From NCBI GenBank assembly GCA_026936335.1, contig JAPMXV010000054.1, positions 368,962-432,961 on the forward strand: a DNA stretch of 64,000 bases, read 5' to 3'. Origin of the DNA: Mantamonas sphyraenae STR306. Its lineage: Eukaryota > Protista > CRuMs. The notes beneath the pieces are model-generated. The model searched no databases and was not told where the DNA came from. It saw nothing but the letters and a program-made list of their open reading frames with translations. Shown one piece after another: positions 632 through 57,255 of this stretch. The position numbers were made by a program, and so were the translations under genes. Each line of letters starts with the position of its first letter. Position 1 is the stretch's first letter.

Positions 632-1873
632 TCATCCAAGGCGCATACGCTTCGAGGAACCTACGTTCCTCCGCCCCACCATGTCTTTGCGCTTGCTCTT
701 GCCGTTCTCAGACAGCCAGTTGTGGTATGCCGGGGTCTGTTTCCACAGGTAATAGTAATGAATCACCTCGCGTTCAGACTTGGTGCCCACGGCGGAGGCA
801 ACAGCCGCAAAGTTCTTCCCGTAGTTGCTCAGCGCCAGCCGGAAACTCCTCTTTTCCTCGTTTGTCCACTCGTTGGCACGCTTACCCCTCTGCGACTCTT
901 CCAGCAAGTCGTTCAATGCTTGCACCGTGTTGTGCTTGCGTCCCATCAGAACGCCCAGCAGATCGTCCACCTGGGCCCCTGCCATGCCAAAGAGCATGTT
1001 GCGTGCCGTGTCCACGTATGCATCCACCTCCTTGGATGACAACTTGCCCGTGTGCCACATCAACTTGCCTCCCTCCTCCTCCTCCTCACTCTCGGCCCGC
1101 CCTCGCGCCGCCGTGTTGTTGCCTTCCTTGCTTCCCACCTCCTCCTCCCAGCTCGGCACCTCCACCTGGTGCGTCGGCCCCACAAAGATGCCCCGCTTCT
1201 TCCCTTTCTTTCCTCCCAGCGCCTCTCCGCCCTCCGACCCGGACATGCTGCTCCCGACGCTTTCGTCCTCCGAGCTTTCTCCCTCCTTGCTCGATTTCCG
1301 GTTCCTCTGCTTCCCGTACGCCTTGCCCTCGGCCCCACCTTCCCCACCTGCCTCCTGCCCGTCATACTCTGCCTCTTCCGATTCATACTCCTCCTCCTCT
1401 TCTTCTTCCTCCTCCTCCTCCTCATCGTCGTGGTCATCGCCCCAGTCGTCGCCATCGTAGTCGTCGTCATCCTCCTCGTCTGACGAAAGATCCTTGTCTG
1501 CAAACACGGCCGCCAGCCCTTGCCGCCCCTCCTTCAGTTTCTGCAGATGTTCCCTCTCCAATGCCCGTTTGTGTCGCTTCTTCTCCTTCCGCAGAGCCTC
1601 TGCCCTCTCCGTAGCCCCTGCCGCTCTGCCTCTGTCGCCGTGACTGCCATTTGTCACTTCCTTCTCCTCTTCCTCCTCCCGTTCTTCCCCTTCCTCTCCA
1701 TTCACATCCGCCTCGTCCTCCGACTCTTCTTCCTCCTCTTCCTCCTCCTCTGCCTCCTCCATCTCGTCTTTCCTCCGTTTTGACCCCTGCTTCGCCGCCC
1801 CGCCATACAGCGAGCGTGTCTTTTCGCTGTCGCCAGTGCCCAGCTCCAGGCTGTCGTCGCTGTCCGAATCCAT
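632..1873 (-). CDS. ELM2-SANT domain protein (MIER/CoREST-like HDAC co-repressor)
   Basis: Acidic N-terminus; IFVGPTHQVEVP (ELM2); WTNEEKRSF...YGKNF...VGTKSEREVIHYYYLWK (SANT). Confidence 0.85.
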   Translation of the reverse strand: MDSDSDDSLELGTGDSEKTRSLYGGAAKQGSKRRKDEMEEAEEEEEEEEESEDEADVNGEEGEEREEEEEKEVTNGSHGDRGRAAGATERAEALRKEKKRHKRALEREHLQKLKEGRQGLAAVFADKDLSSDEEDDDDYDGDDWGDDHDDEEEEEEEEEEEEYESEEAEYDGQEAGGEGGAEGKAYGKQRNRKSSKEGESSEDESVGSSMSGSEGGEALGGKKGKKRGIFVGPTHQVEVPSWEEEVGSKEGNNTAARGRAESEEEEEGGKLMWHTGKLSSKEVDAYVDTARNMLFGMAGAQVDDLLGVLMGRKHNTVQALNDLLEESQRGKRANEWTNEEKRSFRLALSNYGKNFAAVASAVGTKSEREVIHYYYLWKQTPAYHNWLSENGKSKRKDMVGRRNVGSSKRMRLG

Positions 1874-38654: not shown

Positions 38655-38759
38655 GTCAGTGTGGCCGAGTGGTTAAGGCGGTGCACTCGAATTTCCTTCC
38701 ATAGGAAAACTGAAATGCATTGGTGTAATGCTGCGTAGGTTCGAATCCTGCCGCTGACG
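38655..38759 (+). tRNA. tRNA-Ser(CGA) with canonical 23-nt intron at 37/38 (38692-38714)
   Basis: Acceptor GTCAGTG/CGCTGAC with G73; A-box TGGCCGAGTGG; anticodon stem GTGCA/TGCAT; long variable arm; GGTTCGAATCC; downstream T-tracts. Confidence 0.92.
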
Positions 38760-40020: not shown

Positions 40021-40802
40021 ATGTCCTCCAGCTGGTTCTCGTGGCTACAAGACGCATGGTCGTCGATGGCCCCATCCTCTTCTGCCTCTTTGGCGTCGTC
40101 GTCCACTCGTTTCGAGCAGGAGTTGGCGTCCAAGCGTGCGTTGCCCCCGTTTACCGCCGAGGTGATGGCGCAGTACGCAGATCTAGAGTCCAGGCATGGC
40201 CAGCAGGCACGCGTGGTGTTCCAGGTGTACACAAACTTGCTTATTGTTGAGCGCTGGAGTGAGATTGAGATGCGCGAGTCGGAAACCGTCGCTGTGCCGT
40301 ACCTTGTGGCGGCTGTGCGCCCACACGTGCGTTTGCCCATCCCAGTGTCTCTGCCTTTTCCAAACACACACACCACTGACTCGTAGCCGTGTGTGCACAG
40401 ACACCCGTACAGGTAATTGTCCCTGTGAAGGCCACCCAGGACGTTGACCTGGCCTGGGTCCACGGCCTGCTCGATTCGATCCCGCATCCGGTACACGGCC
40501 GCGTCCTGGGCAGTCTGCTGCTGGCTGTGGTCGACAGCGACAGCACTGTCGTGTACTACCGCATCAGCGATGGCCTGCTGCACCCAGAGGCCGAGCAGGA
40601 GCGCAAAAAGGAAAGGGTCGAGTCGCTCACCACAGAAGTGGCCGTGGCCCGGCGACTGGCTCAGTCTACGGCCAAGAGGCGGAGGGACAGTGTCAAAGAG
40701 GAGGAAGAAGAGGAGGAGGACAATGGTGCACGAGGAGACGGCAGCGGGGACGTGCAAGAGACGGGCGCCGGCCACAAACGGCAGCGAGTCGGGAACGCGT
40801 GA
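40021..40802 (+). CDS. TSEN15: tRNA-splicing endonuclease subunit Sen15; 2 exons
   Basis: FQVYTNLLIVERW and LLAVVDSDSTVVYYRISDGL (Sen15 signature). Confidence 0.85.
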
Positions 40803-51357: not shown

Positions 51358-51459
51358 GCTCGACTAGCTCAGTAGGTAGCGAGATTGTTCTTCGGAGCAA
51401 CCACCAATAGCGCAGGTCTCATAATCCTGAGGTCGTGAGTTCGAGCCTCACGTCGAGCA
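51358..51459 (+). tRNA. Elongator tRNA-Met(CAT), copy 1, with 29-nt D-arm insert/intron (51380-51408)
   Basis: Removing the insert gives a 73-nt cloverleaf: acceptor GCTCGAC/GTCGAGC, D-stem GCTC/GAGC, anticodon loop CTCATAA, T-arm GTGAG-TTCGAGC-CTCAC; poly-T terminator follows. Confidence 0.9.
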
Positions 51460-51731
51460 ACACTCTTTTTTTTTTTGGGGGGGGGGGAATGGGATGGGGG
51501 TGGGGTGGAGGGGATGGGGGTGGGGTGGAGGGGGGGAGTGTGGGATGGGAGGGTGGGAGGGGGTGGGAGGGTGGGAGGGTGTCGTTGCTAGGGAGGAATG
51601 CGAAACGGGCGCCACAGGAAAGTCCGATTCAACGTCGAGTCGTGAGGTGGAATTGTCTTTGCCCGGAGGGTCCTCAGACACACAGGTATACTGCATACTG
51701 GTCTCTCATCACTTTGCTTTTGCTTCGGGTC

Positions 51732-54700
51732 ATGTCTCATCGAGGGGGCTTGTGTGGGAAACGGGGGAGGAGCCGGGGAAAGTGGGTCTGGGTGCTGTGC
51801 GTGCTGGTCGTGGCATTGCTTTCGACAGTGGAGAAGGTGCAGGGCGACTACACGCAACAGTGGCGCGACAAGACAAACATGGCGGCGTGCGGGTTTGCAA
51901 GAGATGAGGAGCTGAACTTTTACGTGGGTGGCTCGCTGCTGAAGGGCGGGGTAGCGCTGCCGGAAGTGTGCACCACGGGGCCACAGTCGAATTTCTTCGG
52001 CGAGGCTACTCTGACGAAGGTGGCACACAACGGGTCGGTGCTGTGGACGACAAAGCCGGCGCCGGGGAGCGGTGCGGAAAATGGGATCCACGCAAGCGAG
52101 GGGACGCCGCGCTCGGTGATCCAGAAAGTGGCGTTTGTGGAGGGCATGCTGTGGCTTAACTACGTGTTTGGCATGCAAGACAGTAACCAGGTGTGGCACG
52201 GGCAAAGCACGCTGCTGCGTGTGTCTTTGGAGGACGGGGCGGTGCTGGCCGCGGTCAACACAACCGCGTACATACAAGACATGCAGACGGTGGAGGGGAG
52301 GTGGTTGTACGCGGTGGGGCAGTTGTGGTCGCCACAGCAGTTTGCGGTCCTCATCATCGATCCGCGTGATCCGGAGAACATGCGCACAATGCCGACCACC
52401 GTCGGCCTGTCCTCGGCCACCTTTACGTTTGACAATCGCACGGGCCAAATGCTGGTGTCGGGGCACAACAACGACATGTACATGCTGCACATCAACGAAA
52501 CCGCGTGCTCGCTGCAGTGGGAGGCGTTCCTGAGCACCGTTGTGGATCACCAGATCGTCAACGGGCTGACGGCCAATGTGGCATGGTCTCTGCAGACCAG
52601 AGACACGCCGTGTCAGAACAACCAGGGAGGGACGACGCCGTGCAGCCAGCTGCGCCGATGGGACAGGAACACGGGACAAGAGATCACGCAACCCACGCTG
52701 ACGGTGTTGGGCACACCCTCGGCCCTCACAAACCACTACGAGGATCCAGACAACCAAATGTGGGTGCTCACGTCCAGCGGTGGGCTGATTTGGAACCGGC
52801 TGGCCGAAAACACAACTGTGATCGACACCAAGCAGCTTTCGCAACACGTGCAGAGCACCATCCACTTTCAGGGTCACCAGATGACGGCGTATGCAGACAC
52901 ACAGACCATCATGACCGTGAGCGACACGGAGTACGACGTGGCGACCAAGTGGGTGACGAACTCGTTGTGGCTGGGCACCTTGTCCGAGTTTTCCGAGGTG
53001 CTGCATTGTCCAGCTGGTACCGAGCGGGGATGTGTCGCATGCCCTCCCACTCTGTCGTCGTCGTCTCTGGCATGCTCCTTGTGCGCCCCAGGTTGGTTCT
53101 CAAACACGACTGACATGGAGTTTTGCCAGCCGTGTCCGGCCGACTCGCCTTCGTTGCTTCCGGGCTCGACGACGTGTGTGCCTGTGCTCACGCGCATCGC
53201 ACCCACGCTGGGGCCATCTTCGGGAGACACGCTCGTGGACATGTGGGGCCACAACATGCAGCCTGGCGTGCCTGTGCCCTTTCTGCATCCAAGCAACTCG
53301 AGCGGCCATGCCGACGACCGAAGCATGCACACGTGCACAGTGTTCAACCCGACGCACATGAGATGCTTCACGCCTGCTCTGACCACTCCACAAGACAGCG
53401 TACGTCAGGCAGGTATCCAGTTTGCGACCGCTCTGCGCCAGGGAACGTATATTCCGTCGTTTGTCTTTTTCCACCCGACCCTGACGTTTATGGACCAGTT
53501 GGCGGGGCCGTACACGGGCGACACGACTATACGCGTCGTCTTTGAGGCAGGATCTGTGCCCACGGGGCTGCCGGAGCAGCCGCAGGCCGAATGCCGTTTC
53601 TCCCCATTGCACGGCACGGAGGGAGAGGCACGAGAGGTCAACGCAACCGTGCTGGACGCGACAAACGTGGTGTGCAAAACACCCGCCCTGCCCGGTGCGG
53701 GCATGTACGACGTCTCGGTGTCGTTCAATGGCGAGCAGTACACCACTGTGAACAACACGCGCCTGCAGGTGTACAACACCACGTTGATGGAGATTTGGCC
53801 GCCCTTGGGCCCGCGAACGGGTGGCACAGAGGTGGTTGTACTTGGACAGGGCGTGGAGGCTACTCCGTACACGCCTGTGGTGTTGTTCACGCCGGATGTG
53901 GCAAACTCGGTTGCGGTCCAGGTGCGAGGCACGGTGGCAAACGGGTCTTTCCACGCGACCACGCCGTCGCTTACAAACACACCTCCGATTGCGCCGGGCA
54001 TGTTGATGGAGGTGACGGTGCAGGTGATGCCGAATGCGGTGCAGAATCTGCCCGACGCGGTACAGTTTCGGATGTACGAGGATCACGGGCTGGGCAGTGT
54101 GCAGCCGCAGAGTGTGCCGTCTGCGCTGCCGTGGGTGTCCATCACGCTGGTGCCGCGTACGACGTCGAGCTTTGCAAACACAGGATCGTTTGTACGGGTG
54201 CGCCTGCGAAGCGACGACGGTGTGGTCGATGTCACGCAGGCTGCGAGCTGGCACAGCCCGTCAAACATCACCACTGAGGTGGACATGGTGGCTTGGAGGG
54301 CGAGCACGCAAATGCACGTCTCTGTGGCCCTCAACGGGGTTCAGTTCAGCCCCGAGGTGAGCGTGTTTGTCTTTGCATGCAATGCGTCGCGCCGTGCATG
54401 GTCACCCACGGCCGGCGGCGCCACATTGCACATCCACGCGACGGGCATTAACGGGCAGCAGGTCACTCGGTGCCGCGTGGGCTCGATTGTGTCGAATGCA
54501 CAGGTGGACGGCAGCGACCTGACCTGCACGACGCCTCCACTGCCCGTTGGTGTGTATCCGTTGGCCGTTAGCGTGGGTGACTCTCCGTACGGCCCATGTG
54601 CTGGATCACATGTGCATGCGTACACAGAGCCTGTTGTGGAGGGCGTCCAACCGCAGAGTGTACCTCGCGGAGCCTCGACGGTGATTACTGTGGTGGGCAC

Positions 54701-57008
54701 AGGATTTGTGGACACTGGCGTGGCCGCAATCAAACTGGGCACGCTAGAGATGGACGCGGTTGTGCTCAACGGCACAGCCATGCGCACAGCAAGCGCAGCG
54801 ACGTTTGGCGAGTCGGCGACGCTGGCTGTGACGGTTGCGCTGAACGGGCAGCAGTTTACGTCGCCGAACGGGGTCAATTTGCGTGTGGGCGCAGCGTGCC
54901 CTGCGGGTACGCAGTCTGTGGAGGGACACAGTGGGTGTGAACCGTGTCCTGCAGGCACGTTCAAGCCGTACGAAGGAAACCAAGCCTGCAGCCGATGTCC
55001 AGCCGATCACTACTGCGGCCAGGGGGCGGTTGAGGCAAACACATGCCCCACAAACACCTACTCGCCAGTCGGATCGGCGAACCTGACGCAGTGTGAGTGC
55101 GCAAACGGATTCTTTGCTGTTGGCTCAACGGCGAAAGGGTGTGAACCGTGCCCGCACGGCGCGCACTGCGCAGGGAACCACGAGCTGCCCGTGGCAGACC
55201 CTGGATGGTGGGGAGCCAACCCGTACAACTTTACGCGATGCCTGGACCCAAGCGCGTGCCTGGGCAACAACTCTTGTGCGGTCGGGGCAAACGGCCCACT
55301 GTGCGGGCATTGCCAAGCTGGCTACTACCACGACGGGGTGCGATGCAACGAATGCTTCTCGCGTTCGTCGTCTTTGCTTGTGTTTCTCCTTGTGTTGATG
55401 GTCGTGTCGGCCACGGCGCTTGTGCGCGTGCTGAACAAGGGCGGCGGGCAGAGCAGCTTGTCGCTGTGCCTGCCGCATCTGCAGGTGATTGCGTTGGCTG
55501 TGGGCACCAACATCCCGTTGACAGACACACTGCGTGCGCTGCGAGGCGCGTACCAGACGACAAACCTGTCTGTGAGCTTGCTGGGACCTGAGTGCGCAGA
55601 CGCGTGGCAGTGGGATTTCAACACGGAGATGCTGCTTGCGTTCTCCACTCCTGGGTTGATCATAGCCACTCTGTGGCTGCGAATCGTTGCCATACGCATC
55701 ATGGACGCCGTGTATCCCAAGGATGGACTGTGTGGGTTGCCTGGGCGCGTGCGGAACTCCTCGGAGGAGCACCGGGCGATGTTTGATGGGATGCTGAACG
55801 ACGCACTGTTTGTGCTGGATTTTCTGTTTATCCCGGTGAGCATGCACATCCTGCGAGCTTTCTCTTGCGTGGATGTGGGCGACGGCTCGGTGCTGGTGGC
55901 GGACACGAGCGTGACTTGCTGGACGTCGGCGCAGCATGCCCAGATCGTTGGCACTGCGACGGTGCTGGTGATCTTTTTCGTTGTGGGTGTCCCGTTGCTG
56001 ATCATGGTAATTGGAGCGTACGGATCGCACAAGTCGCTGTACCGCTCCGAGGTGTTTGAACGCAGGTTTGGTTCGATGTACGCACAGTTCTCGGCGGGCT
56101 CGATGTGGTTCGAATCTGTTATTCTGGCACGTAAGGTCAGCGTGGCAGCGTCCAATGTGTTTGCGCACCAGGAGGTTGTGTTCCAGAATGGTCTGGCGCT
56201 GCTGGTGGTGCTTGTGAGCAGCGTGTTGCAGCTCAGGCTGAGGCCGTTCCGTACCCACGCGCAGAATCGCACGGAGGAGTCGCTGCTGGTGATGAGCTCC
56301 ATGATCATCCTGTTGACAATGATGATGAGCGTACCGTTGTCTCAAGGCACGGTGGACACGCTGACGTGGCTTGTGGTCGCACTGTTGCTGCTGGTCGCCT
56401 TGCAGGTGGCGTGGGCGGCGTACGACACACTGCGCTCACAAGCGCTGCCTTCGTGGGTCCGCAGTGCGCTGCACGAACGCCAGGTGGCCAAACTGAGCGA
56501 GGAAGCGCTTGCAGAGGGCGACGACGGAAGCGACAAACGGCGTTTGGACGATGTTGGCTTGTTGGGCAAACAGGCACCGCTGCACCTGGCAACAGTCACA
56601 TTTGAGTGGCAAGGCGAAGTGGGCAATCTGTGGGAGTGGCTGGAGTGTGAGGCACAGCTGCGTGCGCGTTGCATGTGCATGGCTGAACCAAGTGTGCAGC
56701 AGGCGTTGATGCTGACGATGCTGCACGAGATCGAGTCGATGGCCATGCACAACGAAAGCGACGTGGAAGCAGCCACCAACATTATGCTTGAGAGCTTTGA
56801 GCACATGGTGCAGGCGGCCAGCGATACGGCGAAAAAGGAGATTGTCGTCGATGCGCTGCGAATGTGGACCGGGTTGCGCCCCAAGCATGGCCTGGCTGCG
56901 TGGCTTGTGTCGGGCGAAGCAGTGCACGTGGATTTGATGTCACAGGTGATTACGGGTGCGCGCGAGCGCACACAGGATGGGCAGGGCAGAGGTTTTGCGG
57001 GAAAATGA
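51732..57008 (+). CDS. Large intronless receptor-like protein: signal peptide, IPT/TIG repeats, Cys-rich GCC2/GCC3 repeats, multi-pass TM C-terminus
   Basis: PTLGPSSGDT, PPLGPRTGGT and VSVALNG (IPT); CPAGT...CEPCPAGTFK; GPLCGHCQAGYY; TM helices with RFGSMYAQF...WFE and RPF. Confidence 0.8.
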   Translation: MSHRGGLCGKRGRSRGKWVWVLCVLVVALLSTVEKVQGDYTQQWRDKTNMAACGFARDEELNFYVGGSLLKGGVALPEVCTTGPQSNFFGEATLTKVAHNGSVLWTTKPAPGSGAENGIHASEGTPRSVIQKVAFVEGMLWLNYVFGMQDSNQVWHGQSTLLRVSLEDGAVLAAVNTTAYIQDMQTVEGRWLYAVGQLWSPQQFAVLIIDPRDPENMRTMPTTVGLSSATFTFDNRTGQMLVSGHNNDMYMLHINETACSLQWEAFLSTVVDHQIVNGLTANVAWSLQTRDTPCQNNQGGTTPCSQLRRWDRNTGQEITQPTLTVLGTPSALTNHYEDPDNQMWVLTSSGGLIWNRLAENTTVIDTKQLSQHVQSTIHFQGHQMTAYADTQTIMTVSDTEYDVATKWVTNSLWLGTLSEFSEVLHCPAGTERGCVACPPTLSSSSLACSLCAPGWFSNTTDMEFCQPCPADSPSLLPGSTTCVPVLTRIAPTLGPSSGDTLVDMWGHNMQPGVPVPFLHPSNSSGHADDRSMHTCTVFNPTHMRCFTPALTTPQDSVRQAGIQFATALRQGTYIPSFVFFHPTLTFMDQLAGPYTGDTTIRVVFEAGSVPTGLPEQPQAECRFSPLHGTEGEAREVNATVLDATNVVCKTPALPGAGMYDVSVSFNGEQYTTVNNTRLQVYNTTLMEIWPPLGPRTGGTEVVVLGQGVEATPYTPVVLFTPDVANSVAVQVRGTVANGSFHATTPSLTNTPPIAPGMLMEVTVQVMPNAVQNLPDAVQFRMYEDHGLGSVQPQSVPSALPWVSITLVPRTTSSFANTGSFVRVRLRSDDGVVDVTQAASWHSPSNITTEVDMVAWRASTQMHVSVALNGVQFSPEVSVFVFACNASRRAWSPTAGGATLHIHATGINGQQVTRCRVGSIVSNAQVDGSDLTCTTPPLPVGVYPLAVSVGDSPYGPCAGSHVHAYTEPVVEGVQPQSVPRGASTVITVVGTGFVDTGVAAIKLGTLEMDAVVLNGTAMRTASAATFGESATLAVTVALNGQQFTSPNGVNLRVGAACPAGTQSVEGHSGCEPCPAGTFKPYEGNQACSRCPADHYCGQGAVEANTCPTNTYSPVGSANLTQCECANGFFAVGSTAKGCEPCPHGAHCAGNHELPVADPGWWGANPYNFTRCLDPSACLGNNSCAVGANGPLCGHCQAGYYHDGVRCNECFSRSSSLLVFLLVLMVVSATALVRVLNKGGGQSSLSLCLPHLQVIALAVGTNIPLTDTLRALRGAYQTTNLSVSLLGPECADAWQWDFNTEMLLAFSTPGLIIATLWLRIVAIRIMDAVYPKDGLCGLPGRVRNSSEEHRAMFDGMLNDALFVLDFLFIPVSMHILRAFSCVDVGDGSVLVADTSVTCWTSAQHAQIVGTATVLVIFFVVGVPLLIMVIGAYGSHKSLYRSEVFERRFGSMYAQFSAGSMWFESVILARKVSVAASNVFAHQEVVFQNGLALLVVLVSSVLQLRLRPFRTHAQNRTEESLLVMSSMIILLTMMMSVPLSQGTVDTLTWLVVALLLLVALQVAWAAYDTLRSQALPSWVRSALHERQVAKLSEEALAEGDDGSDKRRLDDVGLLGKQAPLHLATVTFEWQGEVGNLWEWLECEAQLRARCMCMAEPSVQQALMLTMLHEIESMAMHNESDVEAATNIMLESFEHMVQAASDTAKKEIVVDALRMWTGLRPKHGLAAWLVSGEAVHVDLMSQVITGARERTQDGQGRGFAGK

Positions 57009-57095: not shown

Positions 57096-57197
57096 GCTCG
57101 ACTAGCTCAGTAGGTAGCGAGATTGTTCTTCGGAGCAACCACCAATAGCGCAGGTCTCATAATCCTGAGGTCGTGAGTTCGAGCCTCACGTCGAGCA
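57096..57197 (+). tRNA. Elongator tRNA-Met(CAT), copy 2, identical to copy 1 including the 29-nt insert (57118-57146)
   Basis: 102-nt sequence identical to 51358-51459; own poly-T terminator. Confidence 0.9.
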
Positions 57198-57255
57198 GCA
57201 ACTTTTTTTTTCCCATGGGACTGCGCCGTCGCGAGCACGTAGTAGTCTCTTGTCG

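Follow-up and report, generated by a model that had tools for sequence, protein, structure and literature searches.

Elongator tRNA-Met genes with a predicted D-arm intron and permuted tRNA-Pro genes in Mantamonas sphyraenae, a flagellate at the base of Amorphea

Archaea, red algae, prasinophytes and nucleomorphs are known to have non-canonical tRNA introns and permuted tRNA genes (PMC4090602, PMC3978253, PMC13578239). A 2026 review places the non-canonical introns of eukaryotic tRNAs in certain algae (PMC13578239), while a 2023 review describes the four-subunit tRNA splicing endonuclease (TSEN) of Amorphea as limited to position 37/38 and proposes non-canonical splicing for simpler enzymes of the two-subunit type (PMC10485636). 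In the stretch of 64,000 nucleotides analysed here (the window; C54:368962-432961, from contig JAPMXV010000054.1 of Mantamonas sphyraenae STR306), two copies of an elongator tRNA-Met (eMet) gene carried a 29-nt insert in the D arm, at position 22/23, which would be removed as an intron through a bulge-helix-bulge (BHB) fold. Mantamonas is a plastid-free, heterotrophic, bacterium-eating flagellate of the CRuMs, a group at the base of Amorphea (PMC10492846). Judging from the disrupted genes found across its genome, M. sphyraenae apparently needs D-arm BHB processing for tRNA-Pro, eMet and tRNA-Arg(UCU).

The mechanism class is already known, since 22/23 is a listed archaeal intron position (PMC4090602) and the red alga Cyanidioschyzon merolae has D-stem introns and a tRNA-Arg intron at 14/15. 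Like Mantamonas, C. merolae combines nuclear D-loop and D-stem BHB introns with double-intron and permuted genes in one genome (PMC3728597, PMC3978253), and both organisms have a tRNA-Arg with a 14/15 intron as well as relaxed BHB forms, which are predicted in Mantamonas. They differ in extent: 79% of C. merolae genes are disrupted, with junctions across the whole cloverleaf, against seven genes of five tRNA species found in Mantamonas, with junctions found only in the D arm. In the 2014 table for C. merolae (PMC3978253), tRNA-Pro does not appear among the permuted genes, nor do 14/15, 18/19 or 21/22 among their junctions. Neither Sen15 nor an A/B-box-binding TFIIIC was identified in C. merolae (PMC3728597), whereas Mantamonas has TSEN15 and Tau95 and thus departs from the C. 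merolae type, which lacks Sen15 and TFIIIC and relies on transcription driven by an upstream TATA element. D-loop introns, eMet included, also occur in Chondrus crispus, another red alga, where splicing was shown by reverse transcription PCR (10.1101/2021.12.21.473619); Chondrus differs in its fixed positions (20/21 and 58/59) and in having no permuted genes (PMC13578239).

Archaeal BHB introns (Crenarchaeota and relatives) share with Mantamonas the 22/23 position and, as predicted here, the BHB geometry and RtcB-type ligation (PMC4090602), but archaea use symmetric EndA enzymes, whereas Mantamonas has a eukaryotic gene of the RNA polymerase III (Pol III) type and human-type TSEN subunits; the likeness drawn here is one of geometry. 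Permuted genes of prasinophytes and of the Bigelowiella nucleomorph likewise place the 3' half first with a short spacer (1-74 nt known; 7, 13 and 49 nt in Mantamonas), and the Guillardia theta nucleomorph also has non-canonical introns in eMet (PMC3978253, PMC4090602). Permuted junctions of the green lineage are nearly all at 37/38, and the genomes of this whole group are algal or alga-derived, unlike that of the non-algal Mantamonas with its D-arm junctions. Three points are new within the searchable literature: the lineage, which is CRuMs and non-algal; the presence of TFIIIC and all four human-type TSEN subunits alongside the disrupted genes; and permuted genes for tRNA-Pro with D-arm junctions that do not figure in the 2014 table. 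That literature, which covers subscription papers thinly, yielded no report of D-arm-disrupted nuclear tRNA genes in CRuMs and no paper about the nuclear tRNA genes of Mantamonas, and an earlier report may exist; tRNA is not mentioned in the M. sphyraenae genome paper (PMC10492846).

The sequence-only reading had placed a 29-nt insert between G22 and A23, and both its sequence and its coordinates were confirmed (Table 1). The interrupted gene carried G1-C72 instead of A1-U72, U54 instead of A54, CAU in a 7-nt loop, A37, U31-U39 and A73. By these hallmarks it is a eukaryotic elongator tRNA-Met, and its use in elongation is predicted. The internal promoter was intact because the insert fell between the A box and the B box, and no TATA-like element was evident upstream of the genes. 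The Rfam tRNA model scored copy 1 at 49.5 bits, placing the insert in the D arm. ARAGORN found no tRNA at this locus when the window was scanned without introns, and wrongly called it tRNA-Arg when introns were permitted.

The two copies were alike at all 102 nt, copy 2 sitting 5,738 bases downstream, while their flanks were unrelated (5 nt in common on the 5' side and 0 nt on the 3' side). Assembly duplication was ruled out as the source of copy 2 because the flanks differ. A mobile element bounded by tRNA repeats was also rejected, as the 5.7-kb interval holds a membrane protein gene (TIG/ephrin-like/TRP-like) and not an integrase or transposase. This gene corresponds to a long intronless open reading frame (window 51435-57008, plus strand) with TIG, ephrin-receptor-like and TRP-like matches, the real start of which lies downstream of the listed one.

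Table 1. Coordinates of tRNA and tRNA-processing features in the 64,000-nt window
Feature	Position	Strand	Details
tRNA-eMet copy 1, 5' exon (positions 1-22)	51358..51379	+	22 nt; intact A box; 5' strand of central helix at 51374-51377
Predicted D-arm intron at 22/23, copy 1	51380..51408	+	29 nt; UUCG-capped hairpin; 3' strand of central helix at 51403-51406
tRNA-eMet copy 1, 3' exon (positions 23-73)	51409..51459	+	CAU anticodon, U31-U39, A37, U54, B box, A73
Pol III terminator-like run of 11 T, 3' of copy 1	51466..51476	+	from sequence
tRNA-eMet copy 2, same as copy 1	57096..57197	+	exons 57096-57117 and 57147-57197; intron 57118-57146
Pol III terminator-like run of 9 T, 3' of copy 2	57203..57211	+	from sequence
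tRNA-Ser(CGA) with anticodon-loop insert (canonical-type intron)	38655..38759	+	canonical class, alongside the D-arm class
TSEN15 gene (structural TSEN subunit)	40021..40802	+	two coding pieces in different frames; start and splice sites approximate

Enumeration covered deletions 24-34 nt long with start points at gene positions 8-29. Among these, a complete D-stem (4/4 pairs), an 8-nt D-loop carrying G18G19 and A21, three of four pairs in the central helix, and pairs on both flanks came together only for the 29-nt deletion at 22/23. The spliced model was 73 nt long and was folded by ARAGORN as tRNA-Met(CAU), bearing out the claim that removal of the insert restores the D-stem and an elongator tRNA-Met of that length. 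The relaxed BHB geometry proposed from the letters was right as well, with a 3/4 central helix, 3-nt bulges, flanks of 2 bp and 1 bp, and cuts falling on the same boundaries. Splicing of the precursor at 22/23 through this relaxed BHB, with a TSEN cut and RtcB-type ligation, is the probable explanation. On this reading the two genes supply the cell's elongator tRNA-Met. Pol III would read them from their internal A and B boxes as far as the T run, a BHB would form across the D arm of the precursor, the endonuclease would cut between G22 and the insert and between the insert and A23, and the exons would be joined by an RtcB-type ligase into a normal 73-nt tRNA. The same activity would excise the 14/15 intron of tRNA-Arg(UCU) and circularise permuted tRNA-Pro precursors at 14/15, 18/19 and 21/22.

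The same enzyme acting at 20/21, the D-loop position of Chondrus crispus, would also yield 73 nt and leave the D-loop unchanged; here too the central helix has three of four pairs, with a single flanking pair. The mature tRNA would then carry U22 and a C13-U22 mismatch, losing the fourth D-stem pair that the 22/23 register restores, and the intron side of the 5' bulge would be unpaired; this register is unlikely. Alternatively, the insert could be retained in a functional tRNA as an extra hairpin from the D-loop near position 20, its last bases serving as A21 and U22. Without splicing, a D-stem of 3 bp can indeed be drawn that keeps G18G19 and an equivalent of A21, and such a molecule is compatible with ARAGORN-type scans. 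However, the ribosome is unlikely to tolerate a 29-nt extension at the tRNA elbow, the BHB register coincides with the stem-restoring boundaries, and sister loci show clear BHBs, which makes retention highly improbable.

The Met BHB by itself is weak, and several points weigh against splicing at 22/23. Shuffled inserts equalled the quality of the helix in 7.9% of trials (p ~0.08, for the Met site alone), and the insert hairpin was no stabler than shuffles (p 0.15). The BHB fold of the precursor (-25.5 kcal/mol) lay about 6 kcal/mol above the minimum-energy fold (-31.2 kcal/mol), and its central-helix pairs reached about 14% in the predicted ensemble, that is, a minor fold. The two copies being identical, they gave no covariation for the Met helix. 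An uninterrupted CAU tRNA is present twice elsewhere in the genome, and the genome searches (25,061,354 bases in 78 contigs) were pattern-based and give lower bounds. The four-subunit TSEN of human and yeast is described as confined to 37/38 (PMC10485636). We infer transcription, cutting and ligation from precedent: both C. merolae (PMC3728597) and Chondrus (10.1101/2021.12.21.473619) have D-arm introns whose splicing was shown; the exact register and the four-subunit enzyme as the cutter are likewise predicted. With the Met BHB weak alone, the case therefore rests on the other disrupted tRNA genes of the genome.

Pattern searches of the genome located a two-intron tRNA-Arg(UCU) gene and a set of permuted tRNA-Pro genes. 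In the tRNA-Arg(UCU) gene (C1:187.3k), one intron, of 29 nt, lay at 14/15 and had a fully paired central helix (4/4) and flanking helix (5/5); the other was a 13-nt canonical intron, and after intron removal its D-loop was the same as that of the intact Arg(ACG) gene. Permuted genes encoded tRNA-Pro(UGG) (C42:619.4k; junction 14/15, helix 4/4, spacer 7 nt), tRNA-Pro(CGG) (two genes, C70:110.5k and 118.3k; junction 18/19, helix 3/4, spacer 13 nt) and tRNA-Pro(AGG) (C70:284.3k; junction 21/22, helix 3/4, spacer 49 nt). As expected of permuted genes, the 3' half preceded the 5' half across a short spacer, leader and trailer formed a BHB, and a T run followed the 5' half; no relocated A box was seen upstream with a strict pattern. 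The Pro junctions were cross-checked against each other, as Pro(UGG) and Pro(CGG), cut at different positions, yielded an identical D-loop on joining.

No unpermuted tRNA-Pro was found in the pattern-based searches, a lower bound, and every Pro gene found had the permuted layout, its junction being a BHB in the D arm. Since the cell needs tRNA-Pro, M. sphyraenae very likely cannot do without D-arm BHB processing. Over the five BHB sites (Met, Arg and three Pro), 22 of 25 predicted pairs formed against a shuffle mean of 11.2, and none of 200,000 shuffles reached 22, although this test is somewhat inflated by register choice, the Pro(AGG) junction having been picked by its BHB among four equivalents and the Arg junction partly so. 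The four further species with D-arm BHB sites, together with the lack of an intact standard eMet gene described below, strongly back the earlier proposal that this organism processes non-canonical BHB sites and that standard scans miss such genes, splicing itself being predicted.

The tRNA set found comprised 44 of the 46 usual eukaryotic species plus tRNA-Sec, and most were uninterrupted. Five species (seven genes) were disrupted in the D arm and six species had anticodon-loop introns. Both intron classes coexist in the genome, as the tRNA-Ser(CGA) gene of the window has an insert of the canonical type. No gene was found for Leu(UAG) or Arg(CCG), which may be absent, or hidden through disruption in the T arm, a type that the patterns would miss.

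Genes with a CAU anticodon were searched for with Rfam, T-loop-plus-terminator and anticodon-arm patterns. At least five were found, namely one initiator on C46, an atypical pair on C30 and the interrupted pair. No intact elongator tRNA-Met of standard type was found genome-wide by these searches, again a lower bound. The initiator (C46:344605-344677) displayed A1-U72, A54 and A60; in its anticodon stem, A29-U41 replaces one of three G-C pairs. The atypical tRNA, in two tandem copies (C30:470057-470130 and C30:470278-470351), combined initiator-like A1-U72 and A54 with G37, U31-G39 and C73, in a full cloverleaf followed by T runs. It scored 49.3 bits with Rfam without any insert, against the 49.5 bits of the interrupted gene with its insert.

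The interrupted pair could be pseudogenes with a random D-arm insertion, elongation being carried out by the atypical tRNA. Eukaryotic tRNA genes with an insertion in the D or T arm are usually counted as pseudogenes (PMC4090602). The weakness of the Met BHB also speaks for this alternative, and the two atypical genes, with their complete cloverleaf and T runs, sustain it at low likelihood. However, the interrupted gene has elongator hallmarks and no other lesion, whereas the atypical gene is initiator-like, scores low with Rfam and has an unusual G37 and C73, and D-arm BHB processing would be needed anyway for tRNA-Pro and tRNA-Arg(UCU). A candidate guide RNA for C34 also fitted the atypical tRNA poorly (-10.8 vs -15.3 kcal/mol), and the pseudogene explanation is improbable. 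No C/D guide perfectly fitting the eMet anticodon arm was found in the genome; the candidate came from a looser pattern, which gave a putative box C/D RNA at C41 ~81,885-81,995, located between coding segments of an MTHFR-like gene. As in SNORD97 (PMC6601510), the antisense element sets C34 of tRNA-Met five bases ahead of the D box. The candidate can pair with the initiator arm and with the elongator arm and does not identify the elongator, because the initiator pairs at least as well.

The machinery expected for splicing at 22/23 was encoded in the genome. Only two PF01974 genes were found genome-wide (on C55 and C62), with no third catalytic subunit. Their best solved relatives in PDB were human TSEN34 and TSEN2 (the two E values being 9e-25 and 2.5e-22), and the catalytic triad of Tyr, His and Lys was recognisable by eye in both. 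The TSEN54 gene (C34) had human TSEN54 as best PDB match (E 1.7e-19). The TSEN15 gene of the window matched Pfam Sen15 with its 3' piece (E 4e-12) and its 5' piece (E 0.028), and human TSEN15 was its best PDB match (E 6e-4). By best-match evidence, as distinct from phylogeny, the genome encodes distinct TSEN2, TSEN34, TSEN54 and TSEN15, and a heterotetramer is predicted. Two RtcB-family genes were present (C70:254326 and C5:366480), one strong (494 bits) and one more divergent. The gene for the TFIIIC subunit Tau95 was also present, while the TFIIIC B-block domain gave a weak match below the cut-off.

Tentatively, the human-type four-subunit TSEN of Mantamonas may itself cut the D-arm BHB, with a broad archaeal-like specificity that would be an old eukaryotic state, the 37/38 restriction arising after the heterotetramer, and D-arm introns being widespread in protists and missed; this is possible but doubtful as a whole. 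It is rather unlikely, though not negligibly so, that 22/23 splicing would be performed by another nuclease or by a TSEN sub-complex without TSEN54, as speculated for C. merolae, leaving the full heterotetramer for 37/38 introns. TSEN54 contacts the folded tRNA at its D arm and acceptor stem, a structure that a D-arm intron would disturb (PMC3728597, PMC10485636). On the other hand, two PF01974 genes without a third catalytic subunit do not indicate a separate EndA-like enzyme, and Xenopus TSEN cuts a BHB placed in mRNA (PMC10485636), pointing to latent BHB activity in the heterotetramer. At the RNA level the sub-complex overlaps with splicing by the complete enzyme, and differs from it in enzyme form only.

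With four subunits and D-arm BHB sites, Mantamonas is a direct test of the link between enzyme architecture and intron position. It tests the 2023 proposal (PMC10485636) because four subunits coexist with an apparent dependence on D-arm BHB processing in a plastid-free heterotroph at the base of Amorphea. It also bears on the ancestral or convergent origin of non-canonical tRNA splicing, and indicates that tRNA sets of protist genomes are under-annotated. If the four-subunit TSEN does cut D-arm BHBs, broad specificity would occur on both the algal and the animal/fungal sides of the tree, and many protists would have D-arm tRNA introns that regularly escape notice, a picture also suggested by two metagenome contigs, probably from stramenopiles.

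These contigs were obtained by searching Joint Genome Institute metagenomes with a gapped exon pattern, which gave four matches (L117-L120). L117 and L118 were ordinary tRNAs, while L119 and L120, from freshwater metagenomes, carried two more eukaryotic eMet genes with D-loop inserts. L119 (3012-3103, minus strand) had an 18-nt insert at 15/16, its helix paired at three of four positions and its two flanks paired, and L120 (~1355-1441, plus strand) had a 13-nt insert with a 4/4 helix (shuffle p 0.009); removal of the inserts left canonical D-loops in both. The gene adjoining the L119 tRNA had its closest named relative in the chrysophyte Spumella vulgaris, and L120 adjoined a mitochondrial-type rps9 gene. 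The source of both is probably a stramenopile, likely a chrysophyte for L119. As single contigs they are leads only, and the genes could be pseudogenes. Contigs with relatives of the L119 neighbour gene had no tRNA nearby, hence no covariation data, and no eMet with a D-arm insert was found in viral contigs.

Further observations concerned other tRNA genes of M. sphyraenae. tRNA-Ile(UAU) (C1:190.6k) carried a structured 46-nt intron at the canonical position, and the tRNA-Sec gene lay at C23:43917-44004 (minus strand, 64.6 bits). Isolated 3' halves of tRNA-Phe (C34:613508 and 623888) were located about 200 bases downstream of intact copies with no 5' half nearby, and are probably fragments. 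Many tRNA genes came in pairs of the same or nearly the same sequence, spaced 4-13 kb apart, for the most part inverted and separated by unrelated sequence (e.g., C52:268318/273877, C34:412867/425295, C60:19485/24430, C42:576318/581739 and window 51358/57096), which suggests a habit of local duplication or gene conversion.
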